Shown here: positions 10,011-63,703 of the stretch, piece after piece
Layout: the number at the start of each line of letters is the position of its first letter
Numbering within the stretch: position 1 is the stretch's first letter
Assembly (NCBI GenBank): GCA_002269645.1
Contig: NIVC01001953.1
Span: forward strand, 1-64,000
Direction: 5' to 3'
DNA from: Macrostomum lignano
Taxonomy: Eukaryota
DNA length: 64,000 nt
Translations under genes and position numbers: made by a program
Notes under the pieces: model-generated
The model's database searches: none
Told to the model about the DNA's origin: nothing
Seen by the model: only the letters and a program-made list of their open reading frames with translations

Positions 10011-11699
10011 TCTTCACCAATTCTCTCTGTTATCCTCCTGGCTCTTTCCTTTATCCCCTCCCCTCTCACTTTTGCTCCTCTTCATAACCATAATTTTCTT
10101 CGAATATCTCACTATCCATCCTGTCAAATCATACTGCCTCTTTAACTCGTTTTTTTCAGTCACTCCTGGTTTGTCTCTGCTTTTGCCCATCAATTCCCTC
10201 GCACTCCATCACCCGTATTCTCCCACACCCATCCCAAATCGATCCGCAAGATTTGTTATATTCGCGTCTCAATTCAACGAAAACCAATCACACCGCCCTA
10301 GCCTAGTTCCCTCTCCGTCGAGCCAAGAGACTCATTAATTATTAAAACCGAAGCAGCAGATAAAAACTGCTTCAAGTTTTCTGTCTTATTTGATTGAACA
10401 GTCTTGCCCGCCTCTCAGTCTTGCAGCAAAACAGCAGAGAGAAGGCGGAGAAGGCAGTTAGAGCCCCCCAAAGGTTATTGACCTCAAACTAAGCGAGAAT
10501 TAGCGATGATGGAGGGCTGAAGCTGGGCAGCAAGAAAAAATTTGAATATATTATTACGTAATCCGCGGCATTCCGCCGAGAAGTGGCCGGTCAAGACTCT
10601 GTGCTGGATATTTGTCTACCAGAAACTAATCTATGCGGGGATTCTGGGTCCAGATTTGGTCGTAAAACTTGAGCATATGGGAGGTCTACAGTGATATTGG
10701 GTACGTTGGAGGATAAATCACATTTTGAACTCGAACTCAGGGACGGCTTCAGTAGAAGTGGACGAGAAAGCTGATTTCTTAGAAAATATTTTTCTAGAAA
10801 ATATCTTGCAATAAAATAAATAAACCACAAAAACTATAATTTAGCAATAAAACAGCTCGAACTCAGGACCTCTAGGCGAATCCCTTGTGCAAGCTCTCTT
10901 GCCTCCGTTGTAAATGAATAAACTCACCTTTAATAGCGAATGCCAAAAATATTTTCACAGAAATGAAATTCGTCCAATTCGTTGATGTCTTTTAAATGGC
11001 CGGGCTCCGAGCATTCCAATACTGCCTACAGCCAATTTTATACAGCCCAGGGCCTCCCCGCCTGAGACTGAAATTCTCAACAAAAGCACACAAAAGAAAC
11101 CCCCCAGCCCGCAATTGAAGGAGCATTATCTTTTTCCTGCCAGCCAGCAGCAGGTAGAAGCAGCAAAGTGCCTCTTCAAGTTCTTTTATTCTCTTTGAAA
11201 GAGCGCGCGCGCGCGCCAACTCTCGGGGCGCGGTTTGGATGGCCCCGCGAGAAACGCGTAGAGAGTCGAGAGACAATTGACCATCTCATTGCAGAGCATT
11301 CTGTCGGCTGGGTCTGAATACAGAATTATAAATAGCCAGGTGGGGCCGTGCGGTGAGAAAAGCAATTATGACTGAGCGGGGCTGCTGCCGCAGGTCGCAG
11401 GTGACAGCAAAGACAGCAGAGCAGACTGGCGCCTCAGAGCGACAGTAGAAAACAGATGTCTGTGGGGCAGCGATTAGCTGCATCACTCTGCCCAGCTTCA
11501 TTCTCCATACCTCCTCTCTTTTCAATGCTCCCCCGGGTTCCATTCCCGATGGAGATTCGGTCCCCCCAGGTGAGGAGATCTCTTGCGCCACAGATCCTGG
11601 TTAGATTCGCGGCCACACCAATTTAGGGCTTGTTAACGGAAGTTGGTCAAGGGGTTGTCGTGCGACTCACAGCCATGATGGCCAGCCCCCAAAGCACAG

Positions 11700-15862: not shown

Positions 15863-15934
15863 GATCCCCCACTCTTCCTGACTGTGAAATACCTGACCGG
15901 ATAGAGCCATAAAATATTTCTAAATTGTACTGAC

Positions 15935-16395
15935 TCTCATATCTCTCTATCACTCCTCTCCCGCTCATATTTCTTTATCTCACCTCTCCCTCTCATCTCT
16001 CTATCTTACCTCTCATATCTCTCTATCTTCCCTCTCCCTATCATATCTCTTTATCTCCCCCTCTCCCTCTCATATCTCTCTATCTCCCCTCTCCCTCTCA
16101 TATCTCTCTATCTCCCCTCTCCCTCTCATATCTCTCCATCTCCCCTCTCCCTCTCATATCTCTCCATCTCCCCTCTCCCTCTCATCTCTCTATCTCCCCT
16201 CTCCCTCACATATCTCTATCCCACCTCATAACTCTCTATATCCCTCTATCTCTCATATCTCTTTGTCCCCCCTCTCATCTCTCTATCTCCCCTCTCGAAC
16301 ACATATCTCAATCTCCCCCTCATATCTCTCCATCTCCCCTCTCCCACACATATCTCAATCTCCCCCTCATATCTCTCTATCTTCCCTCTCCCTCA
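15935..16395. repeat. ~28-bp pyrimidine-rich minisatellite (CTCATATCTCTCTATCTCCCCTCTCCCT)
   Basis: Related to the array at 21240-22510. Confidence 0.85.
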
Positions 16396-17450: not shown

Positions 17451-17903
17451 CTAATTTGCACCTGTAAAATAATGAATAATAAATATTGATATAAGAAGTT
17501 TCACCTTAAATCCCAGAATATTGATCCGATTCGTGATCCGACAGCCTTCCTGCGCAGTGCTGACTCAGGTGAACATTTTCTTCTCTTTCATCCCCAAGGG
17601 TTTCGAATTCAGCAAGCTTCATCTTTTCGGTTGCGCCCTACGACGTTGCTTTATGAGACCCAACAGGAAGCAAGCCTGTTTTGTGTTTGAATTCGTGGAT
17701 TTCTGTTGATTTATAAAATCTGCAATTCTGATACTTTAATACTGGCACTAGTAGTCAGTTTAGAATTTTCCACATCAAAAGAGTTCAGTTTTAGAAGAGT
17801 CAAGATTCTACAAACTTGGGGATCATGGGTACGCTCGTATTGGTTGGGCGGGGAGACAGCCAGTATCATGAAGACCCATGAATTCTACCGCCGCCCAAAG
17901 GTC

Positions 17904-18053
17904 GCGGTACCAGTTCTGGACGGTGCACGTCGAAGGCGCAGAATTGCCCAGAGCTGCCTGCATCTCTTCATGGCACTGCTGCGTCGTGAGGCCGCGCTTG
18001 AAATTGTAGAAAATTATGGCGCGGATGTCGCGTCTCGACAGTTCGGCGGCCAT
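17904..18053 (-). pseudogene. Mariner transposase N-terminal helix-turn-helix fragment
   Basis: MAAELSRRDIRAIIFYNFKRGLTTQQCHEEMQAALGNSAPSTCTVQNWYR matches the mariner N-terminus and the local copy at 48685 (HFRAMIYYDFKSGL...APSRSTVFDWF). The catalytic domain is absent. Confidence 0.8.
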
Positions 18054-18741
18054 GGCTGGCCGGCGGCTGAAAACTGAGTTGCAATTGCAGATTGCACTGC
18101 TTCTCTTAAAGCTGAGCACTTGAATTTTTATATGCCCGTTAAAAACTTATGGGATTAAGGTTTGGTGAAATTTTAGGGCGCGGTATTGTGGGAAAGTGGT
18201 CGAACTCAAAAACTTTCGGGTGCCATCAAATGAATACAATGGTAGATATGTACGAGCGTACGTACACTGTACAAATCTAATCTAATTTTTCCCTCAAAGC
18301 CTCACGGCCTTACGGCCACAGCTCTTGTTACAGTGTCATCTCATTCAGTCGGTTCTTATCCTTTTTAATATTTATAACTACGCTCGTATATTCTCGGTTG
18401 AAGTTTTGCTAAAAAATGGCTGGAAATTGTCCGATTTTTTCTGGAGAAATCGGTCGAGCCATTCTGCAAAGCCAGTGCGGATCACATTTCAGTTGAAGAG
18501 TTGACTTTTTCAATGTCTAATCTAACGATGATTAACTACCGAGCAATTCAGTCAGCTACAGAAAATTCGCAGAAGCAAATTGTTGCACTTCCGGGAGTAC
18601 CCGATGCTGATCCCAGCCCAGCTTCCGGACTGACACGGCAGATGTAGTTGACTTCTTCCGCTCATTATCGCGCACCTGTCTTGTCTGAAAATTGCATTTA
18701 TAGAAGCGCATAGCGCCAGTTGAGCACTAGCTTCATCACAA

Positions 18742-18981
18742 TTGATTGTCAACCCTCTAACATCGATTAGAACTTCCTTCGTTAAACAATGTTCTCAACA
18801 AAAGCAATTCTCCGATGCGTTCATCAACGCCAACGACGCGTCGCCGATGATCGACCGGCAGCGCCAGTCCCTGGAAGACATGCGGAACTCCAAGCGGGCC
18901 GGCATTCTCGGCGGCATGCTGAAGCGTCACGCCAAGCGTCAAGGCGGCAACTTCCTCAACACCTACGGGATGCAGGGATAG
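18742..18981 (+). CDS. Neuropeptide-precursor-like terminal exon
   Basis: GC-rich from ~18810: ...MRNS-KR-AGILGGML-KR-HA-KR-QGGNFLNTYGMQ-G-stop. Three dibasic sites, N-terminal Gln and C-terminal Gly on the last peptide. No signal peptide in this ORF. Confidence 0.4.
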   Translation: MIVNPLTSIRTSFVKQCSQQKQFSDAFINANDASPMIDRQRQSLEDMRNSKRAGILGGMLKRHAKRQGGNFLNTYGMQG

Positions 18982-19271
18982 GCGCTCTTGATTGGTCAGG
19001 CTGACAGATGGATCGCTCTGCTATTTTTCATAACCATTAATACGCAATAAACGCAAACTTATTCTGACTAATATTATTACAAACACGAAAAATAAACTTT
19101 GCATAACTATCTATAAATCAGAGAAGATCTGCTTTTGTTACTTTGAATCTACATGTACGTACTCTTATATATTTGTCAAGTGTTGTTAAAAAAATACGAC
19201 ATTGTTCCCATCAAGAGTCAACAAATTACAATATAATGTATGGTTGAGCCAGCCAACTTCGACTCAACCGA

Positions 19272-19612
19272 ATGGACATCAGGGCGGTGACCATGGCACT
19301 CTCGGGCCATGAAGTTTTTGCTAAGCATCTGAATGGCCCATCTTTACTCAGGACAGGCTCACCCTACATGTACCTCGGCCCAAACCGGGACTTTTCGGAC
19401 GTTTTCAGGCCTGAGAATTTCTGCCAGCTCGTCCGCTACCTGCTACCGGGCGGAGGGGGACCGCGCTGCGGACACCGGCATCACCGGATCTCCTTGTGCG
19501 GCACCGCAGCACCAGCTGCCCGTGGTCGCCAGAGGTCAGCAGAATGAGCGGCGACGTCTCCTCGCTGTATCCGGATGCCCGGAGCCCCTGCAGCTAAAGT
19601 CAAGTACTTCAG
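19272..19612 (+). other. GC-rich exon-like fragment of an unknown protein
   Basis: Protein-like frame DIRAVTMALSGHEVFAKHLNGPSLLRTGSPYMYLGPNRDFSDVFRPENFCQLVRYLLP; possible frameshift in the G-run near 19455. Confidence 0.3.
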
Positions 19613-21239
19613 TAGTTAAACGTAGTTAAACATCACACTGCTAATTGTATTCAGCCAATACCTGCATATTGTATTGTATTATGCTTATCAAATATGATTT
19701 GCTTCAAAGGTTCAGAAAGTCACTATAAAATCCCTTGGGGTGATTGACTCTGCTTTTATTTGATAGTGCGCTACTAATAGTAGTGCCACCTACAAGCGTA
19801 AATACTTACGTAATTACGTTTTTTTAGAGTGATGATCTCTGTAGTGTTCGACTCTTTCTCGTCCAATGGAGGCCAAAAGTCCCAGTTAAATTCTGCAAGC
19901 GGTATGAGCTTGAGAACGCACCTATACAAGTGCTCAAGGGTCAACAGAATTCCACAAATTTTTGCTTCCTCTCGACTGGCCTTGCAAAATAATGTCAAAC
20001 AAGGTTAATCACGTGATGCTCTCCAAGGCTATGGCCATGGCAGTCTCACTCTGGCCATCAGGAGTTCTGACGTCACTGTACCGTTGCTAAAAATAGTGCT
20101 TTTTAGATAATCACGTGGAGATCGTGTGCAAAAATAAAGAAGTAGATGGGGACGAGTCAATTTAGGTAGGATGTGACATCACTCAGGGGAGTCAGGTAGA
20201 CTAAGGGTCAAACAGTAGCAAGCAAAACGGGTGGGCGAGCGAAAATGAAGAAATGGAGTGATGGAGTGAGTGAGTGATCACACAGCAAGGGCGAGCAAGT
20301 TTTGTCAGATGATTTTTCAGAACACTGTGAAGGGGTTGACTGCAACTGGGAGAGGGTCGTATGTAAAGATGAGAATAAATAATTGGCTGGGAATCTTACC
20401 GATTATTTAAGTGCTGTGGCGGCCAGACTACGCGACCGGCAGCACCAGTGCAGCCGCACTGGAAACCCCCCCCGCCAACCTCTGTCTGGCTGAGGTGGGG
20501 TGGTTGCGCACCGCGCTAGCCGGCTCGCTAAGCCAGGGGGGTTGGCGTAGCCAATCACGCCACGCCACCGGTTCGCACCTCCCTTGGCCCCTCAATAATC
20601 TCGCGCTGTTTATTATATAAATACACGCGCAATGCAGCGCAAAATCTTCGCTGCCAAACCATCTATGAAATTAAAAGGCCTTCCGCCTCAGTGCAGAAAT
20701 AATTAATAAAGACTTCATTCGCTATAGTACTACAAGAAATATAAGTTACCTTTATAATGTATTTCGTACTTTTTCAAATCAAAAAGCAAGGTTTTTTAAT
20801 AATGCGAAAACTTGTTTTCGATTATTCTTGTTGAAATGCGTTGAAATAAAACTTTTACTGTTTGTCTTTTCTGTCTGATTAAAACAAATGCTCAAAAATA
20901 ACTACATCATGCTCCCACGCTATTATTTTACTTTAGCTGCAGCTTCTTCGATAAAAATTCGTTTTGCAAGAGCTATAAATCTTTTTTGATATTAATCAAG
21001 ACCTTTTCTTTGATATTAATAAGCTGCCGAGTTACGAGCGTAGTAAGAGGTCAGATGGTTGACATTTTTGACACACTTAGCTCAGAGAACCATTGTGATG
21101 AGAACCATTACGCTCGTATGATTCGGTACAATAAAACTAATCAGTAACTATTGCGCTGTCTTTGTAAAAGTTTTTGTTCTCACTTTGCTATAGGGACACT
21201 AGTGATAGAAGCTGATTAATATCTAGCTAGTGATGCGGT

Positions 21240-22510
21240 CTCATGATATATCATCTCCCTCTCATATCTCTCTCCCACTCCTCTCCCCTCTCATATCTCT
21301 CCCACTCCTCTCCCTTCTCATATCTCTCCCACTCCTCTCCCCTCTCATATCTCTCCCACTCCTCTCCCTTCTCATATCTCTCCCACTCCTCTCCCCTCTC
21401 ATATCTCTCCCACTCCTCTCCCCTCTCATATCTCTCCCACTCCTCTCCCTTCTCATATCTCTCCCACTCCTCTCCCCTCTCATATCTCTCCCACTCCTCT
21501 CCCCTCTCATATCTCTCCCACTCCTCTCCCCTCTCATATCTCTCTTCCACTCCTCTCCCCTCTCATATCTCTCCCACTCCTCTCCCCTCTCATATCTCTC
21601 CCACTCCTCTCCCCTCTCATATCTCTCTTCCACTCCTCTCCCCTCTCATATCTCTCTTCCACTCCTCTCCCCTCTCATATCTCTCCCACTCCTCTCCCCT
21701 CTCATATCTCTCTCCCACTTCTCTCCCCTCTCATATCTCTTTCCCACTCCTCTCCCCTCTCATATCTCTCCCACTCCTCTCCTCTCTCATATCTCTCTCC
21801 CACTCCTCTCCCCTCTCATATCTCTCTCCCACTCCTCTCTCCTCTCATATCTCTCCCACTCTTCTCCCCTCTCATATCTCTCTCCCACTCTTCTCCCCTC
21901 TCATATCTCTCCCACTCTTCTCCCCTCTCATATCTCTCTCCCACTCCTCTCCCCTCTCATATCTCTTTCCCACTCCTCTCCCCTCTCATATCTCTCTCCC
22001 ACTTCTCTCCCCTCTCATATCTCTCCCACTCCTCTCCCCTCTCATATCTCTTTCCCACTCCTCTCCCCTCTCATATCTCTCTCCCACTCCTCTCCCCTCT
22101 CATATCTCTTTCCCACTCCTCTCCCCTCTCATATCTCTCCCACTCCTCTCCCCTCTCATATCTCTCTCCCACTTCTCTCCCCTCTCATATCTCTTTCCCA
22201 CTCCTCTCCCCTCTCATATCTCTCCCACTCCTCTCCTCTCTCATATCTCTCTCCCACTCCTCTCCCCTCTCATATCTCTCTCCCACTCCTCTCTCCTCTC
22301 ATATCTCTCCCACTCTTCTCCCCTCTCATATCTCTCTCCCACTCTTCTCCCCTCTCATATCTCTCCCACTCTTCTCCCCTCTCATATCTCTCCCCCACTC
22401 CTCTCCTCTCTCATATCTCTCTCCCACTCCTCTCCCTTCTCATATCTCTCTCCCACTCCTCTCTCTCTCTCCTCTCATATCTCTCTCCCACTCATCTCTT
22501 CTCTCATACC
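21240..22510. repeat. 27-bp pyrimidine-rich minisatellite (CTCATATCTCTCCCACTCCTCTCCCCT)
   Basis: About 45 units; source of the ISLPLLSPL ORFs. Confidence 0.93.
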
Positions 22511-22517
22511 TCTCGTA

Positions 22518-22868
22518 TCATGAAGACAGACTAGTAAAGACAGGCAGACAGTATCATGAAGACAGACTAGTAAGACAGGCAGACAGTATCATGAAGACAG
22601 ACTAGTAAAGACAGGCAGACAGCATCATGAAGACAGACTAGTAAGACAGGCAGACAGTATCATGAAGACAGACTAGTAAGACAGGCAGACAGTATCATGA
22701 AGACAGACTAGTAAGACAGGCAGACAGCATCACGAAGACAGACTAGTAAAGACAGGCAGACAGCATTATGAAGACAGACTAGTAAGACAGGCAGACAGCA
22801 TCACGAAGACAGACTAGTAAAGACAGGCAGACAGCATTATGAAGACAGACTAGTAAGACAGGCAGACA
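22518..22868. repeat. 35/36-bp tandem repeat GTATCATGAAGACAGACTAGTA(A)AGACAGGCAGACA
   Basis: About 10 units. Confidence 0.92.
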
Positions 22869-23414
22869 GACAGAATTTCGAGACAGACCGCGCAGTTAAA
22901 TGCATTCTGTCTCTAAGAACGAGAAATTCCAGCCACTAGCGAAATCGCTTCGACTCTGTCTGCTTCAGACGTACATATTGTCGAATCCTAGGGGGAACTT
23001 ACTCTGTACTGCTATATGGAATGGCCATTGCCCATTGGTCAGTACATCTATGCGCGTACTACTGTACTCGAATAATAGTAGTAATATGGGACCGTAAAAG
23101 AATTTGACCATCGTAAAGCGTATTGTTCCGTGTTAGGCAAGTACAGTGTACATTTCTAAACAAGTTTTTCCTCATGGTCTTAAGCTATAGTGAAGTCTTA
23201 TTCCTACTCCCTCCGCCAGGGATGACGATTTCAATTTCCTTGGTCTTTGTCTGTTCAGTGTTGTCTGGCACTGGCAGTGAACACTGACTTATAATACCAG
23301 TCTGAAAGAACAAGGAACTAGCTCTATACTTAATATCTGGGCATTGCAAACCAAACAGACTGCTATAGCGTATCAAATAAAATCTACAATTAGTTAAGGA
23401 AACTGCAATAAGTC

Positions 23415-24761
23415 ATGGGAAGCTCGCAATCGAAGCCGTCCGTCGTTTCTAAGGCCACCAGGCCGACAGCAAGCGTTATTATTCGGCTCGACGAAGAGAG
23501 ATTCCGCCTGGTCGAGTGCCTGAAGCCTCTCGTAACGCTTTCAATGGATGAGCTGATCCAGGATTTTAATAATAATACCAACATTTCCACCAAGCAGCAA
23601 TTTGTAATGTTCAAAAATCGACTGGTCGAAGTCGTGGAAACTGCCAAAAATATTTTTGACAAACTGGAGCAGTCCGAACAAATCAATTTACAACTGAAGA
23701 GCGGCTGCCCCAACGAGACAGTGCTGGCCGAGCTACTGAACAGTCAGCTGAAGATTTGTATCTGGCTTCTAGAAGACACAAACAGAAAGAAACTTACAGA
23801 AACTTTTCTTAACGCAAAGGAAGCGGGCGACGAGCTGCTTCAGTTTCTTGACACGTGGCTTAACTTTTTCCATTTCGGCATAGACACGCATGCTATACTT
23901 TGGAAGGATGCCGCACTCCAGGTTATGTCATCTGTGGATCAGTTTAACAGCTGCCTGGCGGATCTACCGAAGTTGACGGAAGAGGCTCGCTTGTGCGACT
24001 TTGAGAGCAAAGATGTGGCTGATTTGATCCAGTCGACATTTATGCTCGGCACGGCGACTGGATGGGACTGCGGAACGACGCAGCGCACTACAGGATGTGC
24101 TGATGACAGCAGCATTCAAACACTTTTGAGAACTGTGAGAACTTTATCAATTATACAGACCAGCAGTCATCAGCAATGGCAATGCCAAAAACTAACCGAA
24201 GAATGGAATCACGCGAGCGAATGGCTAAAATCATTTCCAAGCTTGAAAATCCATTCCGAAAGAGTAACAAGCTCCATTGTACAACTGGGTTCAGCATCTG
24301 TCACCGTTGGAAAATACAATCAGGAGGTCTGCAATCTGATGAAAGAATTCCAGAAAGCTCCAACGCCTGAGATTCAAAGAAAATTAAAAGATAAACTCGA
24401 ACTGCTCAAGAAACAGAGATGCGAATTGTGCCGCGAAGCCATTGCTTTGCGGGAAAATATAGAGAAAACGATCGAAGCAGTCGGAAAAATGCAACTTCGG
24501 GATTCTACAAACGATGAAGGCTTTACCAACCCTTTTAAATGGATTTGGTCGAAAATACGAAAACTCGTATGTCAAATGGTCACTAGGGAAGAGCCGGTTG
24601 TTGTCTGCGATAATTTGCTAAGATGCTTTCTCGAGCGGATAATAGAAAATACCGAAGAAGCTCGCACTGGCTTCGAGGGAGTCAACGAGTTGCATCGCAG
24701 CATCGCAACCGACAGAGGTTGTTACTATTCAGGTGGTGACTTGTACTTCGATGCGCACTAA
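23415..24761 (+). CDS. Uncharacterised intronless helical protein, paralog A (448 aa), N-myristoylation motif MGSSQSK
   Basis: Uninterrupted ATG-to-stop ORF. Highly similar to 34673-36016 and shares conserved blocks with 26642-27994. Confidence 0.88.
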   Translation: MGSSQSKPSVVSKATRPTASVIIRLDEERFRLVECLKPLVTLSMDELIQDFNNNTNISTKQQFVMFKNRLVEVVETAKNIFDKLEQSEQINLQLKSGCPNETVLAELLNSQLKICIWLLEDTNRKKLTETFLNAKEAGDELLQFLDTWLNFFHFGIDTHAILWKDAALQVMSSVDQFNSCLADLPKLTEEARLCDFESKDVADLIQSTFMLGTATGWDCGTTQRTTGCADDSSIQTLLRTVRTLSIIQTSSHQQWQCQKLTEEWNHASEWLKSFPSLKIHSERVTSSIVQLGSASVTVGKYNQEVCNLMKEFQKAPTPEIQRKLKDKLELLKKQRCELCREAIALRENIEKTIEAVGKMQLRDSTNDEGFTNPFKWIWSKIRKLVCQMVTREEPVVVCDNLLRCFLERIIENTEEARTGFEGVNELHRSIATDRGCYYSGGDLYFDAH

Positions 24762-26528
24762 CTGTCCTTGTCCGTCTGTTTTGAAGCCTGACTCGAACAC
24801 TTTTATTATTCTTAATTCTGTTTTGAAACCTTTTACGAGTATGTGTTTAAAGAACATGGTCCGTTTGGCTTTAGAAGTTCAACTTTTGCCACCTCTTAGT
24901 ATAGAGACAGAGGCACCCACCTGGTAGACCAAGACACCAGATATTGAAGCCCTTAAGGTTGCGGAAAGCCTCCTAATTCTCGACGGCTTTGGCGTGTCAC
25001 ACCAGAAATTTTAGAGAAACAGAAGTTTGGGTTTGATGAAACCAATTATATCATACTTCAATTACGACGTACCATTATAAATTAAAAATCAAGGTGTGTC
25101 ATATTTAACCTTTTTTAGATTATTGTTATTGTTCAAATGCGTTGAATTTGAAGTTGAAATGCTTTTCCGTCTTGTCCGATTAAAACAAATGCTCAAAAGT
25201 AGCTACACTATGCTCCCAGGCTATTATTACTTTTCATTTTACTTTAGCTGCAGCTTCTTCGATAAAAATTCGTTTTGCAAGTGCTACGCTTGTATAAGAA
25301 TATATCGAACCACTTCTAATCATCCTAATCAAACAGTAGTACTAATAAGTAGTAGTTATAATAAAATATTCTATCAAGATCACAAAGGTTCCTATTAAAA
25401 TTTTCACGATGATAGATAAAAAGACAACAGGTTCTGGATTGTGCTCGAAGGATGCACTCTGCGTTATTGACATGTCCGTGACCTCTTGTTGCAGTTCAGT
25501 CGGTTCTTAACCGTTTTGTCTGCAGCTCAACTTTCGGCTTAATTTTTTAGCTGAAAGCTTTCCCAATATTTCCTAAAAAAATCGGTCGTGCCATTCTGCA
25601 GCGAATCAATTACCAGCTAACGGGGTGATTTTTTTCTCAATTTCTACGATACTAAAAATGACAAATCGCCGGGTACACAGTTAGCTACAGAAAATTCACC
25701 CAATCGGTTTGTTGCACTTCCGAGCAGAGATGAAGCAAAAAAGTTTTTTGGGTGCAGATCCCAGCCCAGCTTCCAGACTGACACGGCAGATGTAGTTCAA
25801 AAAGTCACTATATAAAGTCCGCAGTCCTATTGGTTTATTAGTCAACAAAATTGAACCAAATGCATCGTTCATTTTTAGATATTTAGCTCGTAAATTGGGG
25901 CGATTGACTCTCCTGTTGTTTGATTATGTGCTACTAAAAGCAGTGCTGCTTACGAGCATCTTTTGCGATAATTGTTCCGGCTATTATCTCTGCAGTCTTC
26001 TAGGAGAGGCCAAAAAGGCCATACAGTTTAGATTCTTCAAGCGGTCATGTGTTTGTGAATTCATGTACAGAAATTGATTTGGGTTTTGTGTTTCAGGGGT
26101 CAGCTGCAGGTTAACTGTCGCCCTTTTAGCCCGCAACACACATGTCCCCCTGAAACCATGGATGTTCAGTTAAATCCTCGTTAATTTGTTCCTCGTGAGC
26201 ATTCATATTTTAAAAAATTGCTTTAAACTGACCATGTCACTGGTAAAGAACCTCGTACTGCATTTGATATGGCAGAATATTTTATCGAACTCCGCTGCGA
26301 TGCATATAAGCTCAGGATTGTTTGCGGGAGTTGATAGCAGAGCATACTCGTAATTCAGACTTGTAAAACACGCACAGAGATTTAGTTTTAGCCGTCAGTT
26401 TGTTTGGGTTAATTACTTTTATCGTAGCTAAGCTCGTAAATAACTATACACAGATCGCATTGTACTACCCATAGTAGTGATACTAATAAGATGTCAAAAC
26501 TTCTTATATGCTAAGGAAGCTAAAAAAG

Positions 26529-26568
26529 CCAATGCACATTAGATGAACACTCTTTGTACCTATAAATA
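26529..26568 (+). promoter_or_regulatory. CCAAT box plus TATA box upstream of paralog B
   Basis: CCAAT at 26529-26533 and TATAAATA at 26561-26568, ~75-80 nt before ATG 26642. AP-1-like TGAGTCA lies just downstream. Confidence 0.5.
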
Positions 26569-26641
26569 AGAGAGATGTTATAGTATAATTGAGTCATATC
26601 GAGTTACATTGCAAGGCTGCTAACAAAACCAAAAAGACATC

Positions 26642-27994
26642 ATGGGCAATCATTTGTACAGCAATCAGCCGGAGACTGAGACGGAGCCGAAGCCCAAACA
26701 GTCATTCGACGCTAAGGCTGTCGCGTCAGCTTTGAAAGTCATACTCCGACTGACTGAGGTGAGACCCAGCCTGTGTGACATCTTGAAGTCAGTAGCTGAA
26801 CTTCAAGTCGGTCTTGGAGACGCTGAAAACACAGCAAAAAATAGAGTCGCTGATAAAAAGGAATTCTTCGAATTTCAAAAGGAACTTCAAAAAGTCATAC
26901 AGATTGCCAAAGATATTCTTATAAGACTAACGGACTTTGGTAGGAATGCCGAACTACTTAATGGAGGAATGGAGCTTTCAAAAGACCAGCTGATCGGGCT
27001 GTTGCGCAGCCAACTAGAGATTTGTACCTGGCTTCTGGCGCAGAAAAGCAAAACCGAGCATGAAAGGACGTTTTTAAAGGCAAAGGAGGAGAGTGACAAG
27101 TTCTACGAATTTCTTCGATCACAGGAAAGAAGTTATTTCAATCGTTTTTTCGGACCAACAGGTACGTTTTATCAATATTGGAAGAATATCGCAAAAAATG
27201 TAAGTTATTTCGCTGGCGAATTCCACACAAGCTTCAGCAATGTCCCAAAGCTACCAGAAGAGGCGCAACTTGCTGAGTTTGAAAGTAAGGAAGCAGTACA
27301 AATAATTAAAGCGACGCTCTTTACCAAAAAATACGAAAAAGTTGTCAAAGACGCAAGAACCCTATCGCTTCTGCAAAAAGGTATTCGCCCGACAGATTTA
27401 GCAGTAATAGCTGAAAGTTGGAACCACATTTCTCCAAAACTAGAGAAATTCGGAATTGATACTAAGTTGATCACAAGCTCGGCTGAAGAACTCTTCAAAT
27501 CATCAGCCACTCTTGCTAGAGACAGCAGAGAGGTCTTCAGGCTGTTGCAGGAGTTTCAAAAAAGCCCGTCACAGGATAAGCACACACAATTACAGGAAAA
27601 GCTGGATTCGTTTAGACAGGCCATTAGCGAATTTTCATCCGCTGTTCACGGCTTGATGGATAATTTCAAGACAACTATTGCTGATGTCGAACAAATTCAA
27701 AAAAGTTACGTATCCATCGCGTTTCATGCGAAAATAATTGAAGCGGGCAAGGAAAAATTTTTTGATTGGCTGCGGTCAATTCCTCTGTTGTGTCGCTTTG
27801 TGGGTGCATCAGAAAATTCTGAACCTGAGGTAGTCACTTGCGACCCGCTGCTAAACTCCTGCTTCGAGAAGATCCAAAAATTTGCTGACGAACTTCACGA
27901 CACTAGCCTTGGAGTTCTGGATTTGCAGCGACACTACCGTGATTTCCCCATTAACTGGAGCAATGGCGAGCCCACCTATTCTCATCGTGAATGA
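26642..27994 (+). CDS. Uncharacterised intronless helical protein, divergent paralog B (450 aa), starts MGNHLYS
   Basis: Shares the blocks LLxSQLxICxWLL, TFLxAKE, PKLxEEAxLxxFESK, RTLS, EVxxLxxEFQKxP and CDxLLxxC with paralogs A and C at the same spacing. Confidence 0.88.
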   Translation: MGNHLYSNQPETETEPKPKQSFDAKAVASALKVILRLTEVRPSLCDILKSVAELQVGLGDAENTAKNRVADKKEFFEFQKELQKVIQIAKDILIRLTDFGRNAELLNGGMELSKDQLIGLLRSQLEICTWLLAQKSKTEHERTFLKAKEESDKFYEFLRSQERSYFNRFFGPTGTFYQYWKNIAKNVSYFAGEFHTSFSNVPKLPEEAQLAEFESKEAVQIIKATLFTKKYEKVVKDARTLSLLQKGIRPTDLAVIAESWNHISPKLEKFGIDTKLITSSAEELFKSSATLARDSREVFRLLQEFQKSPSQDKHTQLQEKLDSFRQAISEFSSAVHGLMDNFKTTIADVEQIQKSYVSIAFHAKIIEAGKEKFFDWLRSIPLLCRFVGASENSEPEVVTCDPLLNSCFEKIQKFADELHDTSLGVLDLQRHYRDFPINWSNGEPTYSHRE

Positions 27995-29823
27995 TTTTAC
28001 CATGCTTTCTAATGTTGTGTGCATGAGCTTCACGAATAATAGGGGTGAACTTTAACGAAATAGCAGAAATAAGAACAGATTTATTATTAATTTTAGAACT
28101 TCTGTGAAATTTCACAAGTTAGCTCAGTCTATTGAGCACTCATACTCGTATAACCTTCATTTAGCATATGCAGGGATCATGAAACAGTTGCATTTTGATG
28201 AACAGGAAAATGCGAGTATAAGATTGACATAAGGCACATTGACACATTGACATAATTGTAAATTGTAAATTGTAAATTCACCGTAAGTAGCTATAGCCAT
28301 ATGAAATCAAGATAGCTATAAGAGTGCTCAACAGATTAAACTGCATGGTTTTTGAAAAAGAGAATTTCGCTGCGTCATGTCTAAGTATAAAAAAACCTTT
28401 TAGTACCTTCTTATTCGAGCCGTTCTTTTTCAGAAGCAGTTTTTTGTACTCGTAAATATGAAATCTTTTTAGGCGCAAGTGTAGCCGCTGCAGCTTAGCA
28501 GTCCCTGTCTCTCTCATCTGTACTGTGCCAGCGATGCTATGTGCTTGTACATTTGAACTTAGTATCTCTTTTTGCTTTTTGCTTGAAATGATGCTAAGCG
28601 TTACTATACAAAAGCAAAAAATAAAAATGATATATGCAGCTATATGAGCTTGAAACCGTCACTCGTCAATTGTCGCTTTACCAAATTTTGTCACTAACAG
28701 GCAAAATACGGCAGCTAGCTACAGCTACAGAACAGACCAACTTCAATTGAATGAATTCAAATGCAACCACGCAGTCAATGAAAAAGTTATGTCCACTATA
28801 TTAGCTGGATGAAAATGAGCCATAACCTATCTCTACATGATTCATCATCTACAGTCGATATTTATCATTACGATGTTATAGGGGTTTAAACTCCCTGGAT
28901 ATTTTTGCTGCTTAAAATGAATTCATGATATAGAAAACCCAATGCTTTAAAACACTTAATGGGACGGCTTCTTAGCTTCTGATATGACCACGATCACATA
29001 ACGCATCGATTCATAGGTTTATCGACTTAATAACAGCAAAAATGCTACTGAAGACTCAAATTGGAGCGGGATTAGCGTTCTTCCTAATCTCTGAAATGCA
29101 TTTTTATAATTGGATTTCTCGTCGCAAGATTGTCTGCGCCTGCGGTAAAACATCCATTCGATGCGTTGGGAGAACACGCAATTCTTCGTTTTTTCCGCTT
29201 CAAATAGATTAAAGAAGTAAAGAAAACAAAATAAATTAATGAACGATCTTCTTGCGGACGCAAAGAGCCTGTTGCTTGTAAAATGATGGTTTTAACGGTT
29301 TAGCTCCTTAATTAAAAAATCGTGGAAATATTGTTAGCAAGATGCACATAAGCAGCTGGAAAATCTTGGACAGCATTGTTAAGCATAACATAATCGCCGC
29401 TTGACTTTAGTTTGACTTTTAGCTCTGAATATTGTTCAAATCGACTGCTGTTTGCCCTTTGTATTAAAAATGTTGTTAAATCTGGACCGGGGGACATTGT
29501 ATTCGCTTCGATGCTTTCCTCCATTTTTGTTTGTTTGTATATTGCTAATTGGTATATACAGTTTTGAACTGGCATAATTTAATTCCTTGAATTTTAGTAC
29601 CCGAATATTTAAGCAGAACCAAAAATATCACTATCCGCCAGACACGTCAGATAGATTACTAAGAGATTAGAGGGGTTTACGTAGTTGCCAGCCAGAAATT
29701 TGTCAATCAAAGTTTACCAGCCAGCTGACTGGTTAAGCACAGTCTTATAATTCATAAGTATATTTACTCCTATATTTACTCATAGACATTCATGAAATTG
29801 ATGTCTCATCGATGGGTGAGGTG

Positions 29824-30877
29824 TGTTGTACTATGGTTTTCTCGGGGTGGCCTGGTAGGTCTTTGAATCCCACCGCTGCCACCAGTGTTGTACCTGTGGT
29901 TGTCCTGCTGTACAGCGCAGTGACTTGGGCTCCGTCCTCTCACTTAGAAGCCTTCTTAACTTTAGTAGCGTAGGTAGTGCTGCCACCAGTTCCTTCAGGT
30001 CTCGGCCTTCGGTGAGGTGAGCTTCCCGTCGGAACGAAATAATGAAGTCAACGAACACAGCACCTAGTGCAGATTTGCAGTTCAACGTACTAGGCGTCTC
30101 GTCAGCCGTACCTGCCGGGCTTGGATGGCAGAGGGAGGGCTGAGTTAGTCTCTCGTAGGCTTGTGGCGCTTTAGTCGGGTCTCAGTCAGACCAATACGAA
30201 CAGACTCAATGTATGCAGAGACTCAGACACTCGGGACGTAATCACACGGAAGAACAAGACTAGCACAGAACTAGACACAGAACAGACTCCTTGACGGAAA
30301 CAAGGGGGAGAGGGCTCCTATTTATAGCCGGGAAACACCCACGCAGAAGACCTCGTGACTTTTTCTATTTTTAGAACTGACGTCACTCGAGAGTCTTGGG
30401 CAGGGTAGAAGCGTGCGGAAGACCTCGTGACTTGTTCTATTTTTAGAACTGACGTCACTTGAGGTCCCCGGCCAGAGTACACGCGGCTGTGACTCAGTTG
30501 CTATTTTTAGCAACATGAGTCACTCCTCTCCTTAGAGAAGGGAGGGGTCCGAAAGCACGTGACTCACCCGGTAAACAGGGCCAACGAGTGCAGTAAACAT
30601 GTTTACTGCACTTTAGGACTTGAAGAACGCAGAGTCTGTCATGTGACTTGCTCACATGACAGAGGAAAACGGGACGGGAACGAAACAGAGACAGCCCACA
30701 GCAGAGAAGCTAAGGGCTGAGAACAAAGACGCAAAAGGCCAGAACAGGCCAAGGGCAGCAGCAGACAGACGAAAGGGAGGGGCGGGAAGCTGACCAGCGG
30801 CATACAGCAACCCAGGGCGAAGGCGAGGGAACAGCTGACAAGGGCGACGCCTAACCAAAAACTAGCGGCTCACTACA
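29824..30877 (-). mobile_element. Solo LTR (1054 bp), probably Ty3/Gypsy type
   Basis: Termini TGTTGTA...CACTACA and 4-bp TSD GGTG (29820-29823, 30878-30881). TATAAATA on the - strand at 30326-30319. Duplicated ~43-bp enhancer-like repeat containing TGACGTCA. Confidence 0.8.
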
Positions 30878-31228
30878 GGTGAGAAATGACTGAAACGTGG
30901 CGAAGCAGTCACAAATACAAAGTGAGATGTAAAGCACATGTAACACTTGTCTGGCTGGTAAATGTTCCACAAATACTTTTTCATCAGTAGACTTAACTGT
31001 TTCTTAACAAAAGAGAACTTCTAAAATTAATTTAGCCCAAAGCTGTTGTCATATCTAAATATACTGGTATATTAACGCTCGTATGTAACCTTATTGGTAG
31101 TTTGATAGTACCATAATTATTTACCTGCACTTATAATATGAGCGCAAACGCACAAAACTTGAGAATAAAATCTACAATTAACAACAACACAACAACAAAA
31201 TACGCTGTCATGATGGTAAAAGTCAGCG

Positions 31229-34080
31229 TCACAGGGCGCGCTTCATGGCTTGGGCGCGAACAAAGGCCGCGCCACCGGCAGTGTCCGGGGCGCCGGCGTC
31301 AGCCAGCAGACAGTCGACATAACGCCGAGTTCGCGCTTGACCTCGCCGGTAGGGTGCCTGCAGCGTGAGCAGCAGCACCTCCTGCACCGGCTGTGGGCAG
31401 TACGACTCGGCGCGGATGAGATGGCCTGCGAGCTGGAGTCGCCGACGGCGCAGTAGATCACTTGGACGTGGCAGGCCAGCGCGGCGATAGAGTGCCGCGT
31501 TGGTGACTCGCTCGACGCCGATGTTGAAGGCGGCGCGCAGCAGACCAGCGTGCGCCGCATCGACTTGCTGTTCGAGTGAGTCCGTCAGCGTCCAGGTCTC
31601 GGCGTTGTACAGCAGGACGGTCTCGATCACCGCCTGGAACAGCGCCGCCCTCTGGCGGTCCGGTAGGGCCTCGGACTGCAGGACTGCCCTCACAGAACGA
31701 AAGGCAGCCCAGGCAAGCCCGCGGCGGCGTCGCAGGTCCTCGCGAGCGTCTGGAACCAGACCGCCGAGGTAAACGAACTGCTGACATCGCGGGAGTTCGG
31801 TCGCCTGCCCGTCAGCGCCTCGGCAGAATATTGCAGCCTCGATGTCGTCCGGCACGCAGAGCACGACGGTCTTCTGCGTGTTGACCACCAGGCCGACACT
31901 CGCCGCAACGGCAACCAGCCTGTCCAGCTGCCGTTGGGCGCCCTCGACGGTCGAGGACAGCAGGGCGAGGTCGTCGGCGTAGCCAAGCACGCTGAGCCGC
32001 TTCTCCGGTTGACGTCGACCCACGCGTCGCTGCAGCAGAAAACCGTCGTCGTCGGTAGGAAGAGCAGTCCGCAGCACCCAGTCAAGCACCAGGACGAACA
32101 GGAACGGCGCCAGCGTATCTCCCTGAAGCACTCCGGAGGATGTCTCAAAGGAGTCCGATAGGCCGTCCGGTGTTGTCACAGCAGCTGTCGTATCACGGTA
32201 CATCGCCATGATGGCGGAGATCAGCTGCTCAGGCACGTTGTACGCGCGGAGCACCATTGGAAGCACGGCTCTGACAACCGAGTCGAATGCCTTCTTGAAA
32301 TCAATAAAGATTAAAATCAGGATCGACTGACGAATCCGCGCCTCCTCGATGACTCGGCGAAGAGCCAGGATCTGCGCCACTGTGCCGCGATGGGGCCGGA
32401 ACCCGTTCTGCTCTGGGCGCAGGTACGGATCCAGCACGGGCTGCAACCGCGAAAGCAGCATCCGGTTGAACAGCTTCGCTGCACAGGACTGAAGGCAGAT
32501 GCCTCGATGGTCTTCAAGCCTAGTGGTGCCCGGCTTCTTTGGAACAGCGACGATGTGCGCCGTGGTCCATTCGTTGGGCGCCGCCTCACCGAAGAGCACG
32601 CGGTTCATCACTCTGGCGACCTCAGCGGCCACACAGGGGATGCGCAGCGCCTCGATGGGCACCTCGTCCGGACCCAGCGCTTTCCCGCCCGGTGACTGCT
32701 GGGCGAGCTTGACAACGTCGGCTGCGTTGACTGGGGCTACGCTGAAACTCTCCTCTGCCGGCAGCGGCGTCTCCGGCGGCAGCGTCAGACTGTCTGGCAG
32801 CGGGGGTGGCGGCGCGTTGACGATGGCGGCGAAGAACTCGCGCAGCTCGTTCCTGCGCTCGTCCGGCGTGTCACCAGCCAGGTGCAGCGGATTGCGCCGC
32901 TTTCGTCCCGTCAGAGCGTTAATGGCGGACCAGGCCACGCGCCCTCTGGCATCGGGCCCAGCGGCAGAGACAGCCTGAATGGCGTCATCGACAGCCGCTT
33001 GTTGGCGCTGCAGGTAGACAGCTGCCAGAGCTGCCTCTGCCTCGCGGGTTGGTCGCCTGCTCAAGCGGAGCTTCTCCAGATCTTCCCTCGCTGCCTGAAT
33101 CGCAGGGTCGTCCTGCCAGACCGGCTGCCCACGTTGAGCCGGTTGCATCATCGGGACTGCTTGCTCCGCGGCGGTTCTGACTGCAGCGCACACTATCGCA
33201 TACTCGGCACTTCCACGCTTGTCGCCCAGCACGGTGTTAAAGGCGCTAGCAAAGCGACGCTGCGTATCGGTGGCTCTGAGCGCGCGGTAGTAGCGCCGCG
33301 GTGGCCGCTTCGGCGGACGGTAGAGCGGATCGCGAAGGTTGAGGTCGCAGATGAGGAGCCGGTGATCGGACCGCAGAGCCAGCGGCGTGATGGTTCGGCA
33401 GTTGACGGCGCGACGACGCTCACGGAAACGCACGAGCACGTGGTCGAGCTGTGCTTGTCTCCGGGTTGCGTTCCTGCCACGCGCGTTCCGTCGCCTCCGC
33501 TTGCAGCCCACGAAGGTTGCGAGACCGCTCAGTGGCTTGCGGAAGCGGGTGTTGGCCGACACCATGTCCTGCCTCTCCAGGAAGTCCTCCAGTGCCTCGG
33601 TGTTGTTGTTCCCGCGTGGCGTCACGAACAGCGACCTCTCGGACCTACGCAGGACTGCGTTCAGGTCTCCGAGGGCGACCGCTGTGTCACGCTGCGCCGT
33701 CGCCTCTACCTGCACTGAGAGCTGCTCGAAAAACTCTTGAGCCTCGTCAGGGCGTGTGGCAGGGGGCGCGTACGCGCAGAACAGGCGAGCATTCCGACCG
33801 CGTAGCCGGACGTCGATCCGAAGCAACCGAGGGGACAGGGAGACGCAGCGACAGCTCTGCTGCAGCCTCGGCCCGATCAGCGCTCCAACTCCTCCACGGC
33901 CTCGCTGGTCCGCACAAGTATAGTAGAGGGTCCACCCGGCGCCCAAGTCCTCACAATGAAGTCCCGGGTCGGCCTTGATAGACACCTCCTGCAGCGAGAT
34001 GATGTCGCAGCTCAGGTCGTACGCCAGCTTCGCCAAGCAGCCTTGAGAGTGCGGCAGTTCAGCGTCCCGACCCGAAGCAT
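31229..34080 (-). CDS. AP endonuclease + reverse transcriptase polyprotein (one frameshift near 34040)
   Basis: MLRVGTLNCRTL (ATG 34080) lies in a different frame from LAKLAYDLSCDIISLQEV. Motifs GDLNA, QLDHVL, SDHRLL, QNGFRPHRGT, FIDFKKAFDSV, GVLQGDTLAP, YADDLALL, YLGG and LLYNAETW are present. Confidence 0.95.
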
Positions 34081-34259
34081 GCCCTGTGGTACGGCTGGGG
34101 CTCGATGCAGTTGAGCCTCACGGTCCCCGGCGCCACCCGGAAGATCCGAGTGGACCCGCGCGGCAGCTCGACGGGCGGCGCCACGCAGCCGGCCTCGTCG
34201 GTTCCGCTCACGCCGGCGCTCAACACGCCGACGGGCGCTCCGCTGCCCTCGCTTGGTCC

Positions 34260-34345
34260 TGCCGCATTTGGCCGCCGCAGCAGTTAAGCGCGGCTCTCGG
34301 CTCTGACCACGAGGAGGTAGCGGCATTTATCTGCACCGTGGTGCA
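34260..34345 (-). ncRNA. HDV-like self-cleaving ribozyme motif at the 5' end of the RTE element (P1 5' strand apparently lost)
   Basis: Minus strand: P2 TGCCGC (34325-34320), P3/L3 ACC-TCCTCGT-GGT (34318-34306), P1' CAGAGCC, P4 GCCGC...GCGGC, GGCCAAA junction, P2' GCGGCA (34265-34260). J1/2-type hairpin at 34332-34345. Confidence 0.6.
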
Positions 34346-34628
34346 AATAAATTAAGACTGCAAATAAATTAAGACTGCAAATAAATTAAGACTGCAAATA
34401 AATTAAGACTGCAAATAAATTAAGACTGCAAATAAATTAAGACTGCAAATAAATTAAGACTGCAAATAAATTAAGACTGCAAATAAATTAAGACTGCAAA
34501 TAAATTAAGACTGCAAATAAATTAAGACTGCAAATAAATTAAGACTGCAAATAAATTAAGACTGCAAATAAATTAAGACTGCAAATAAATTAAGACTGCA
34601 AATAAATTAAGACTGCAAATAAATTAAG
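34346..34628. repeat. 17-bp tandem repeat AATAAATTAAGACTGCA, ~16.5 copies, at the 5' junction of the RTE
   Basis: Perfect units ending exactly at the TSD. Confidence 0.95.
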
Positions 34629-34672
34629 ACAATTAGTTACAGAAACACTGCTGACCGAAACTACAATAAGTC

Positions 34673-36016
34673 ATGGGAAGCTCGCAATCGAAGCCGTCGT
34701 TCTTTACCAAGGCGGTCAGGCCGGCAGCAAGCGTTATTATTCGGCTCGATGAGGTGAGACTCCGCCTGGTCGAGTGCCTGAAACCTCTCGTAACGCTTTC
34801 AATGGATGAGCTGATCCAGGATTTCAATAATAATATCAGCGTTTCCACCCAGCGGAAATTTGTAATGTTCAGAGATCGACTGGTCAAACTCGTGGAAACT
34901 GCCAAAAATATTTATGACAAACTGGAGCAGTTCGAACAAATCAATTTACAACTGAAAAGCGGCTGCCCCAACGAGACAGTGCTGGCCGAGCTACTGAGCA
35001 GTCAGCTGAAGATTTGCATCTGGCTTCTAGAAGACACAAACAGAAATAAACTTACAGAAACTTTTCTCAAGGCAAAGGAAGCGGGCGAAAAGATTTTTCA
35101 GTATCTTAACTCGTGGATTCAACTCGTAGGACGCCTCCTCAAAGGCATAGACATGCGTACATGTATACTTTGGAAGGATGCCGCACTCCAGGTTATGTCA
35201 TCTGTGGATCAGTTTAACAGCTGTCTGGCGGATCTACCGAAGTTGACTGAGGAGGCTCGCTGGTGCAACTTCGAGAGCAAAGATGTGGCTGATTTGATCC
35301 AGTCGACATTTATGCTTGACGCGGCGACTGGATGGGGCTGCGGAACGACGCAGCGCACTCCAGGATGTGCTGATGACAGCAGCATTCAAACGCTTTTGAG
35401 AACTGTGAGAACTTTATCAATTATACAGAGCAGTCAGCAGCAATTGCAATGCCAAAAACTAACCGAAGAATGGAATCTTGCGAACGAACAGTTAAACACA
35501 TTTCCAAGCTTGAGAATCTATTCCGAAAGAGTAACAAGCTCTATTGTACAACTGGGTTCAGTATCTGTCACCATTGGAAAATACAATCAAGAGGTCTGCA
35601 ATCTGATGAAAGAATTCCAGAAAGCTCCCTCGCCTGAGATGCAAAGAAAATTAGAAGGTAAACTCGAACTGCTTCAGAAACAGATGTGTGAATTGTGCTG
35701 CGAAGTCAATGCTTTGCGGGAAAATATAGAGAAAACGATCGAAGCAGTCAGAAAAATCAAACGTAGGGATTCTACAAACGATGAAGGCTTTTTTAAACGG
35801 ATTTGGTCGAAAATATGTCGACTGGTTACTGGGGAAGAGACGGTTGATGTCAGCGAAAGTCTGCTAAACTGTTGCCTCGAGCGGATAATAGAATTTACCG
35901 AAGAAGCTCGCACGGGCTGCGAGGGAGTCAACGTGTTGCATCAGCGGTTCCGACGCATCGCAACCGACAGTGGTTGTTACTTTTCAAGTGGTCACTTGTA
36001 CTTTGATGCGCACTAA
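34673..36016 (+). CDS. Uncharacterised intronless helical protein, paralog C (447 aa), N-myristoylation motif MGSSQSK
   Basis: Close paralog of 23415-24761 (both end GxLYFDAH). The 5' and 3' flanks are also homologous. Confidence 0.88.
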   Translation: MGSSQSKPSFFTKAVRPAASVIIRLDEVRLRLVECLKPLVTLSMDELIQDFNNNISVSTQRKFVMFRDRLVKLVETAKNIYDKLEQFEQINLQLKSGCPNETVLAELLSSQLKICIWLLEDTNRNKLTETFLKAKEAGEKIFQYLNSWIQLVGRLLKGIDMRTCILWKDAALQVMSSVDQFNSCLADLPKLTEEARWCNFESKDVADLIQSTFMLDAATGWGCGTTQRTPGCADDSSIQTLLRTVRTLSIIQSSQQQLQCQKLTEEWNLANEQLNTFPSLRIYSERVTSSIVQLGSVSVTIGKYNQEVCNLMKEFQKAPSPEMQRKLEGKLELLQKQMCELCCEVNALRENIEKTIEAVRKIKRRDSTNDEGFFKRIWSKICRLVTGEETVDVSESLLNCCLERIIEFTEEARTGCEGVNVLHQRFRRIATDSGCYFSSGHLYFDAH

Positions 36017-53100: not shown

Positions 53101-53196
53101 CGAAAAGAGCGACTGGTAGATAGGGACTCTTGCGTTGATGAGGTGCGAGCCGAACTCGCTTCTCTAGCTGCTGCTCAGCAGAAGACTGAGCAGTAA
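50185..53196 (+). CDS. HARS: Histidyl-tRNA synthetase; exons 50185-50523, 51015-51500, 51812-52141, 52882-53196
   Basis: [17 protein letters not shown]|[53 protein letters not shown] and the anticodon-binding domain. All junctions are GT-AG, phase 0. Confidence 0.97.
50552..50980. repeat. 30-bp minisatellite CATAATCCCTTCAGTCTCTTCCCCTATCCC (HARS intron 1)
   Basis: Units at 50701, 50731 and 50761. Confidence 0.9.
51556..51762. repeat. 38-bp minisatellite containing CTGATTGGTCAG (HARS intron 2)
   Basis: Units at 51629 and 51667; ~5-6 copies. Confidence 0.9.
52170..52815. repeat. 31-bp minisatellite CTGGCACTCCAGTGTCCTCAGATCCCTCAAT (HARS intron 3)
   Basis: Units at 52261 and 52292; ~20 copies. 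Confidence 0.92.

Positions 53197-55725: not shown

Positions 55726-63703
<7,978 letters not shown>

Follow-up and report, generated by a model that had tools for sequence, protein, structure and literature searches.

In this study, we analyzed positions 1-64000 of contig NIVC01001953.1 of Macrostomum lignano (assembly GCA_002269645.1), a stretch hereafter called the window, and found that it carries three genes of one family, designated A, B, and C. Two more contigs, NIVC01000469.1 (L001) and NIVC01002446.1 (L003), are collinear with this locus over many kb. Seven copies of the gene were found across the three contigs, four A-type (A, C, A' on L001, and A'' on L003) and three B-type (B, B' on L001, and B'' on L003). 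We tentatively read them as a Macrostomum-restricted, fast-evolving family of cytoplasmic proteins built of two helical bundles, in which the A-type members may be peripheral scaffolds or adaptors tethered to membranes by myristate.

Intact reading frames and coding constraint

A, B, and C are intronless open reading frames (ORFs) on the same strand, coding for 448, 450, and 447 amino acids (aa), as described in an earlier note on this DNA (Table 1). Each begins at the earliest possible start codon following an in-frame stop. By our own estimate, DNA of 40-46% GC would contain an ORF of this length (~450 codons) by chance with a probability of ~1e-12 for each gene. In the alignment, amino acid identity was 80% between A and C and 31% between A and B. 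Three conserved blocks named in the earlier note, LLxSQLxICxWLL, PKLxEEAxLxxFESK, and EVxxLxxEFQKxP, were found in A, B, and C. The fourth was present in A (CDNLLRC) and B (CDPLLNSC), but the spacing given for it, CDxLLxxC, was slightly off.

The open frame was kept in all seven copies. The B-type copy on L001 is interrupted by a 1.3-kb transposon and is intact once this element is removed. All insertions and deletions were in frame, 7 of 7 between A and C and 8 of 8 between B and B''. Without constraint, the probability of this outcome would be ~(1/3)^7 and (1/3)^8 by our arithmetic. Given the preserved frames, broken only by one transposon, and the absence of frameshifting indels, the genes in the window and their copies on the other contigs are true protein-coding genes.

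The strength of the constraint was examined with nonsynonymous (dN) and synonymous (dS) divergence. Between A and B, dN was 0.67 and dS was saturated. The dN/dS of A was 0.60 against the L001 copy and 0.39 against the L003 copy, and that between A and C was 0.76-0.90, with 0.7-1.0 in the helical domains. Constraint was thus weak overall, with values of 0.6-0.9 in most recent pairs and a range of 0.4-0.9 across the family. It was focused in two places, the N-terminal nonapeptide of the A-type and the connector between the two predicted domains. In the 9 codons of the nonapeptide, no nonsynonymous substitution separated A from C, and the connector had a dN/dS of 0.13 between the same genes. Amino acid changes were symmetric, 17 in the A clade and 16 in C, and C is therefore not decaying faster than A.

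Among the three genes of the window, only B has a GenBank gene model (P0001, transcript-derived). GenBank models for this assembly were derived from RNA sequencing (RNA-seq), and transcripts overlapping the repeat annotation were dropped (PMC5730564). Since the models come from RNA-seq, the B-type genes have transcript support. None of the four A-type genes, which are intact and code for 447-451 aa, has a model. The removal of repeat-overlapping transcripts may be the reason, and because the pipeline worked in this way, the missing models are uninformative.

Two further annotation errors concern the B-type. The "intron" of BOX15_Mlig018364g1 (P0002; L001:10417-11719, NIVC01000469.1 in reverse orientation) was found to be a non-autonomous DNA transposon of ~1.3 kb. 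It is bounded by terminal inverted repeats TAGGGGTGTTCGGG...CCCGAACACCCCTA and flanked by an 8-bp target-site duplication CACACAGA, and it lacks GT-AG ends. Reading through from the L001 gene into the transposon meets a stop ~40 codons on. The genomic copy is interrupted, and the P0002 model was probably built on a transcript of the uninterrupted L003 copy. On L003, the intact ORF of 457 aa is annotated merely as a 53-aa product, BOX15_Mlig005982g1 (P0003), which looks like a mis-spliced gene model. The analysis thus corrects the annotation at three points, namely the four unannotated A-type genes, the transposon annotated as an intron, and the 53-aa product given for the 457-aa gene.

Predicted N-myristoylation, fold, and search for relatives

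The PROSITE pattern PS00008, G-{EDRKHPFYW}-x(2)-[STAGCN]-{P}, which describes the sequence context of N-myristoyltransferase (NMT) substrates, was applied at the N-terminus. Gly2, which would be exposed on removal of the initiator Met, was invariant in 7 of 7 copies. All four A-type copies begin with MGSSQSKPS and match the pattern; residues 3-20 carry a net charge of +3, and no Cys lies nearby. The B-type N-termini did not match, with Tyr6 in B (MGNHLYS) and Phe6 in B' and B'', including P0002 (MGNIWFK). The N-termini had been read correctly in the earlier note (MGSSQSK in A and C, with G2, S6, and K7; MGNHLYS in B). Its description of three myristoylation-motif paralogs holds for A and C and fails for B because of the Tyr at position 6. 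Since the B-type fails PS00008, lipid tethering cannot be a function common to the whole family. The A-type start is close to MGSSKSKPK, the start of the SH4 region of c-Src. Membrane tags tried in M. lignano embryos included tags acylated at the N-terminus, a Src64B myristoylation tag among them, and several efficient tags were identified in that set (PMC12633465). These results suggest that the A-type proteins most likely carry a myristoyl anchor, as predicted from the motif.

Protein structures were predicted with AlphaFold for A (m3a602c07b838) and B (m2053213aa3bb), with mean predicted local distance difference test (pLDDT) values of 66 and 72. Both models were all-helical with matching helix order, which agrees with the all-helical character proposed earlier; both rest on one shared, shallow alignment of 4 sequences and are not independent. 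In the A model, a polar N-terminal tail is followed by a four-helix bundle (~10-184) with long helices of ~30-50 residues each, a connector, a low-confidence linker rich in Gly, Thr, and Cys (~203-231), and a second bundle of about five helices (~232-431). The linker of the A-type holds a 22-residue Gly/Thr/Cys-rich insertion, which B lacks while keeping the same helix order otherwise. We also asked whether the two bundles arose by internal duplication. This was rejected, as hhalign gave a probability of 0.2% for the N-terminal half against the C-terminal half.

The connector PKLxEEAxLxxFESK (PKLTEEARLCDFESK in A, PKLPEEAQLAEFESK in B) showed the highest conservation within the family, with 61% identity between the A-type and the B-type compared to 30% in the helical domains. 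In agreement with the earlier note, no signal peptide was detected, and hydropathy analysis gave no segment of transmembrane grade, the highest Kyte-Doolittle mean over 19 residues being 1.0-1.4. The N-terminal 20 residues were polar and the isoelectric point was 5.5-6.4. No catalytic or enzymatic motif was seen in the helical bundles.

Relatives of the family were sought in sequence and structure databases. With hmmscan, no Pfam family was above threshold for any of the five available proteins; coiled-coil noise below threshold differed from copy to copy (DUF7307, TMP_3, MutS_III, DotZ, and DUF4698). In the Protein Data Bank (PDB), phmmer and profile hmmsearch gave nothing below E=0.02. An exhaustive hidden Markov model (HMM) search of 1.84 billion representative proteins, a library in which other Macrostomum species are apparently not included, returned only the B-type proteins of M. 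lignano and one spurious match. The latter, P0004, was rejected as a homologue, being a repeat-driven match to "LLKEFKDDPSE" repeats. Two word-indexed protein searches gave no remote homologue outside M. lignano. UniRef automatically names P0002 after DHC_N1 (dynein heavy chain N-terminal region 1), and this was not reproduced by hmmscan at E<=5, which listed DotZ, NAAA-beta, DASH_Duo1, and AATF-Che1 without any of them reaching its cut-off.

At E<=0.001, Foldseek found no match for the A or B model against the PDB, or for the B model against BFVD. The best matches to the A model were designed single-chain four-helix bundles of 190-200 aa (PDB 5vju, 8d9o, and 6z0c), with TM-scores of 0.5-0.6 normalised to the target, a root-mean-square deviation (rmsd) of ~5.5 Å over ~210 columns, E values of 0.05-0.2, and 11-12% identity. 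DH-domain chains of Vav1 and PDZ-RhoGEF recurred at E 0.25-1.8; they were rejected in view of TM-scores of 0.12-0.19, an rmsd of 15-25 Å, and the absence of a RhoGEF match in Pfam. The proteins had been described as belonging to no recognisable family, and the Pfam, PDB, HMM, and Foldseek searches all agree with this. So far as detected, it appears restricted to M. lignano and would belong to a taxonomically restricted class. Its orphan status is unremarkable, because a homologue in human, Schmidtea, or Schistosoma is lacking for 35-44.5% of the genes of M. lignano (PMC5816591).

Paralogous contigs, duplication history, and surrounding elements

M. lignano carries most of its genome in three paralogous copies, or three subgenomes (PMC10733133). 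The A-then-B order was kept on all three contigs, with the B-type gene lying head-to-tail ~1.9 kb downstream of the A-type gene, and this fits the three-subgenome structure. Identity of A to the A-type copies was 93.5% (L001) and 93.7% (L003), and identity of B to the B-type copies on the two contigs was 58%. C was missing from the corresponding position on both paralogous contigs, which makes it an extra A-type copy in the window version only. The block at 28.0-36.4 kb, comprising a long interspersed nuclear element (LINE) and gene C, was lacking on both.

The age of the duplications was judged from dS, which was 0.12-0.13 between C and the A copies and 0.05-0.075 among the A copies. As the former exceeds the latter, C predates the split of the subgenome A copies. 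The A-B pair is, judging by its saturated dS, ancient. The family had been called tandemly expanding. The local duplication in a setting rich in transposable elements (TEs) agrees with this, but the term is overstated, since the A-B pair is ancient by this measure and C split off early (dS 0.13 vs 0.05-0.075).

Upstream of the ATG, A and C remain homologous for only ~50 bp, up to a 17-mer x 17 array adjoining the LINE 5' end. Downstream of C, homology to A fades gradually, and no poly(A) tract was found there. We considered whether C is a retrocopy of a trans-spliced mRNA, using the spliced-leader (SL) sequence of M. lignano (PMC8629364). This was rejected by the lack of an SL remnant and of a poly(A) end and by the gradual downstream decay. 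From these boundaries, C is a DNA-level duplicate of A without its native upstream region, and not a retrocopy. The 17-mer unit, TGCAAATAAATTAAGAC, resembles the sequence ~35-50 bp upstream of gene A, and the array looks like a recent local amplification. A similarity of the array to the reverse complement of the SL was also rejected, as an ungapped search allowing <=3 mismatches gave no match.

Measured against L001, the window (17452-27994) showed a substitution divergence that rose steeply along the locus. From 0.9-1.4% before gene A, it increased to 3.7% over the coding sequence of A and 5.0% over the spacer separating A from B; within B, it was 16.6% for the 5' part and 27.3% for the 3' part. 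The mean over the whole genome is 2.2% (PMC10733133). The synonymous divergence of B was also raised (dS 0.37), so that its divergence is not simply due to positive selection. On these values, B and B'/B'' are far older than the subgenome split. Possible causes of the gradient are old haplotypes or exchange with unseen members of the family.

The genes had been described as TE-embedded, which is fair, given a LINE ORF between B and C, satellites upstream, and a DDE transposase fragment downstream. The LINE ORF2 is apparently intact, has 64% GC amid ~40% GC, and lies outside the helical family. The satellite arrays are present on all three paralogous contigs in differing copy numbers, and they yield spurious "ORFs" of 426-434 aa (21230-22534) made of SPLISLPLL-type repeats.

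Table 1. Positions of the family members, their motifs, and other elements in the window and on the two paralogous contigs
Feature	Contig	Position	Strand	Details
Gene A (A-type)	window	23415..24761	+	448 aa; uninterrupted intronless ORF; no GenBank annotation
N-terminal nonapeptide MGSSQSKPS of A	window	23415..23441	+	fits NMT consensus, PS00008
Connector motif PKLTEEARLCDFESK of A	window	23967..24011	+	residues 185-199
Gene B (B-type)	window	26642..27994	+	450 aa; uninterrupted intronless ORF; GenBank model P0001
Connector motif PKLPEEAQLAEFESK of B	window	27245..27289	+	residues 202-216; from alignments
Gene C (A-type)	window	34673..36016	+	447 aa; uninterrupted intronless ORF; unannotated
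N-terminal nonapeptide MGSSQSKPS of C	window	34673..34699	+	fits PS00008
A-type gene A'	L001 (NIVC01000469.1)	6695-8050		B-type gene P0002 ~2 kb downstream
A-type gene A''	L003 (NIVC01002446.1)	6659-8008		
B-type ORF B''	L003 (NIVC01002446.1)	10001-11374		intact, 457 aa, 99.8% identical to P0002
LINE ORF2 (apurinic/apyrimidinic endonuclease and reverse transcriptase)	window	31229..34036	-	935-aa open frame; RVT_1 3.7e-28, Exo_endo_phos 3.4e-07
17-mer x 17 tandem array, TGCAAATAAATTAAGAC	window	34342..34630	.	100% identity; between LINE 5' end and gene C
Satellite array	window	21257-22514		29/56-bp unit x ~45 copies
Satellite array	window	22515-22869 (also 15934-16252)		35/71-bp unit x ~10 copies
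Filamin-repeat exon	window	2689-3594		Pfam Filamin, 6e-32
ISXO2/IS1595-like DDE transposase fragment	window	43660-44316	-	4e-14
Exon with class-II tRNA-synthetase anticodon-binding domain	window	52162-53196		HGTP_anticodon, 8.5e-15
425-aa ORF	window	60649-61926	-	Pfam matches without a significant stretch; probably low-complexity

Possible roles and comparison with known systems

In the tentative reading given at the outset, the A-type proteins would be co-translationally N-myristoylated on Gly2, and the myristate together with the weakly basic N-terminal tail would tether them reversibly to the cytoplasmic face of a membrane. A tethered A-type protein may then serve at the membrane as a peripheral scaffold or adaptor, and of its parts the conserved connector would most likely bind a partner. 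The B-type protein would be a poorly lipidated or non-lipidated partner of the A-type, or a diverged paralog; partnership of the two products is speculation. If this is true, a cleanly defined lineage-restricted family is added to the many uncharacterised proteins of M. lignano, an animal amenable to transgenesis and RNA interference.

Several results weigh against this proposal. The dN/dS of the helical domains between A and C is statistically indistinguishable from neutrality in a rough z-test (z ~1.3). Gene C has lost the native upstream region of A. The A-type genes have no gene model, which is uninformative in view of the annotation pipeline. The B-type copies fail the NMT pattern, and their N-terminal tails are neutral to acidic. 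The predicted template modelling score (pTM) of AlphaFold was 0.47 from the alignment of 4 sequences, which makes the domain arrangement uncertain. In addition, "scaffold or adaptor" is the default reading of a helical protein without a catalytic motif, not a positive finding.

It is plausible on base rates only, and on balance unlikely, that the genes form a lineage-specific structural family of the germline or sperm whose changes result from sexual selection. Such a role would be compatible with a myristoyl tether. Macrostomum-specific genes make up 48.5% of germline genes compared to 35% overall (PMC5816591), and the fast sequence evolution and the long helical bundles without an enzymatic motif would also fit. 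However, this enrichment is mild, and Mlig018364 and Mlig005982 were not found in the examined part of the germline/neoblast table or in the literature searched.

An absence of any host function is improbable. The genes would then be decaying or neutral ORFs, or would encode the protein of an unrecognised mobile element, such as a myristoylated Gag-like protein. Retroviral Gag proteins are myristoylated and helical. The TE-rich setting, the end of the upstream homology of C next to the LINE, the A-C dN/dS near 1, and the lack of annotation of the A-type genes all point in this direction. However, the indels are without exception in frame, no stop codon interrupts any copy, and A and B keep 31% identity and conserved motifs despite saturated dS. 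The homology between the three contigs is collinear for many kb past the genes on both sides, as expected of paralogous chromosome segments and not of copies of an element. No terminal repeats flank the A-B pair, and neither an SL remnant nor a poly(A) tract was found at C. No Gag, capsid, or zinc-knuckle match was found in Pfam, among the top 50 Foldseek matches in the PDB, or with Foldseek against the viral BFVD set for the B model. Both the in-frame pattern of the indels and the collinearity of the paralogous flanks contradict this explanation.

The earlier note had proposed a membrane-attack, cell-death, or immune effector, namely a lipid-anchored helical-bundle executioner similar to MLKL, RPW8, and HeLo proteins or to alpha-pore-forming toxins, which would insert into or disrupt membranes from the cytoplasmic side. 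We found nothing specific to this and regard it as unsupported and improbable. The N-myristoylation motif of the A-type, the predicted four-helix bundle of the N-terminal domain, and the local duplication of the family would suit it, and so would the fast evolution, if taken as the trace of an arms race, with the helical domains at a dN/dS of 0.7-1.0. However, the four-helix bundle is among the commonest folds, so that its prediction weighs little, and synonymous divergence is raised as well, so that the rapid evolution cannot be taken as a sign of positive selection.

A resemblance of the N-terminal ~130 aa to MLKL had been noted by eye. Aligned with hhalign against the N-terminal region of MLKL (human and mouse sequences), the family gave a probability of 0.3%, and the best match lay outside the claimed region. 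MLKL_NTD had no Pfam match at E<=1 to 5 and no PDB sequence or profile match at E<=10. Pfam likewise gave no match to RPW8, HeLo, Helo_like_N, ClyA (HlyE), Hbl (Bacillus_HBL), Nhe, or ApoL. The PDB sequence and profile searches returned no chain of MLKL, HeLo, RPW8, ClyA, Hbl, Nhe, or ApoL, and none of these families was among the top 50 Foldseek matches of the A and B models, where generic bundles ranked best. A pseudokinase or other sensor domain was not found either, as there was no Pkinase-type match in Pfam and the predicted structure is wholly helical, without a kinase fold. A hydrophobic hairpin, a transmembrane-forming helix, and the N-terminal hydrophobic helix of HeLo and RPW8 proteins were all absent from the hydropathy profile. 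The family would be important only if this unlikely reading were true. It is very improbable that the A/B pair is instead a flatworm-specific, myristoyl-switch-controlled membrane-disrupting or cell-death/immune system, independent of MLKL, HeLo, gasdermin, and ApoL, in which the fast evolution of the bundles would reflect an arms race and the depth between B and B'/B'' would reflect selected old haplotypes.

The designed four-helix bundles (maquettes) share a generic up-down bundle geometry with the predicted N-terminal domain of A. They are artificial, and the match describes a shape and implies neither relationship nor function. MLKL, HeLo, and RPW8 proteins are alike in having an N-terminal helical bundle, which in our family is predicted. 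The family differs in its longer helices (~30-50 residues), in having no pseudokinase or NLR partner and no membrane-inserting helix, and in the lack of similarity in sequence or profile. MLKL is not known to be myristoylated. The toxins ClyA, Hbl, and Nhe are also elongated, all-alpha proteins of roughly 300-450 aa, but they are secreted, bacterial, and equipped with a hydrophobic beta-tongue or helical hairpin, whereas the family has neither a signal peptide nor a hydrophobic segment.

The anchors of Src-family (SH4) and MARCKS-type proteins resemble the A-type in Gly2, Ser6, and Lys7, in the lack of a nearby Cys, and in a few basic residues after the motif. However, the rest of the A-type protein is unrelated to Src-family proteins and has no SH3, SH2, or kinase domain. 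Its basic cluster is also weaker (net +3), the B-type does not share the pattern, and lipidation is here a prediction. With Macrostomum-specific genes as a class, the family shares the absence of a detected outside homologue and fast evolution. Within that class, it stands out by an unusually clear architecture, with a lipidation motif, a connector motif, and an A/B pair on three contigs.

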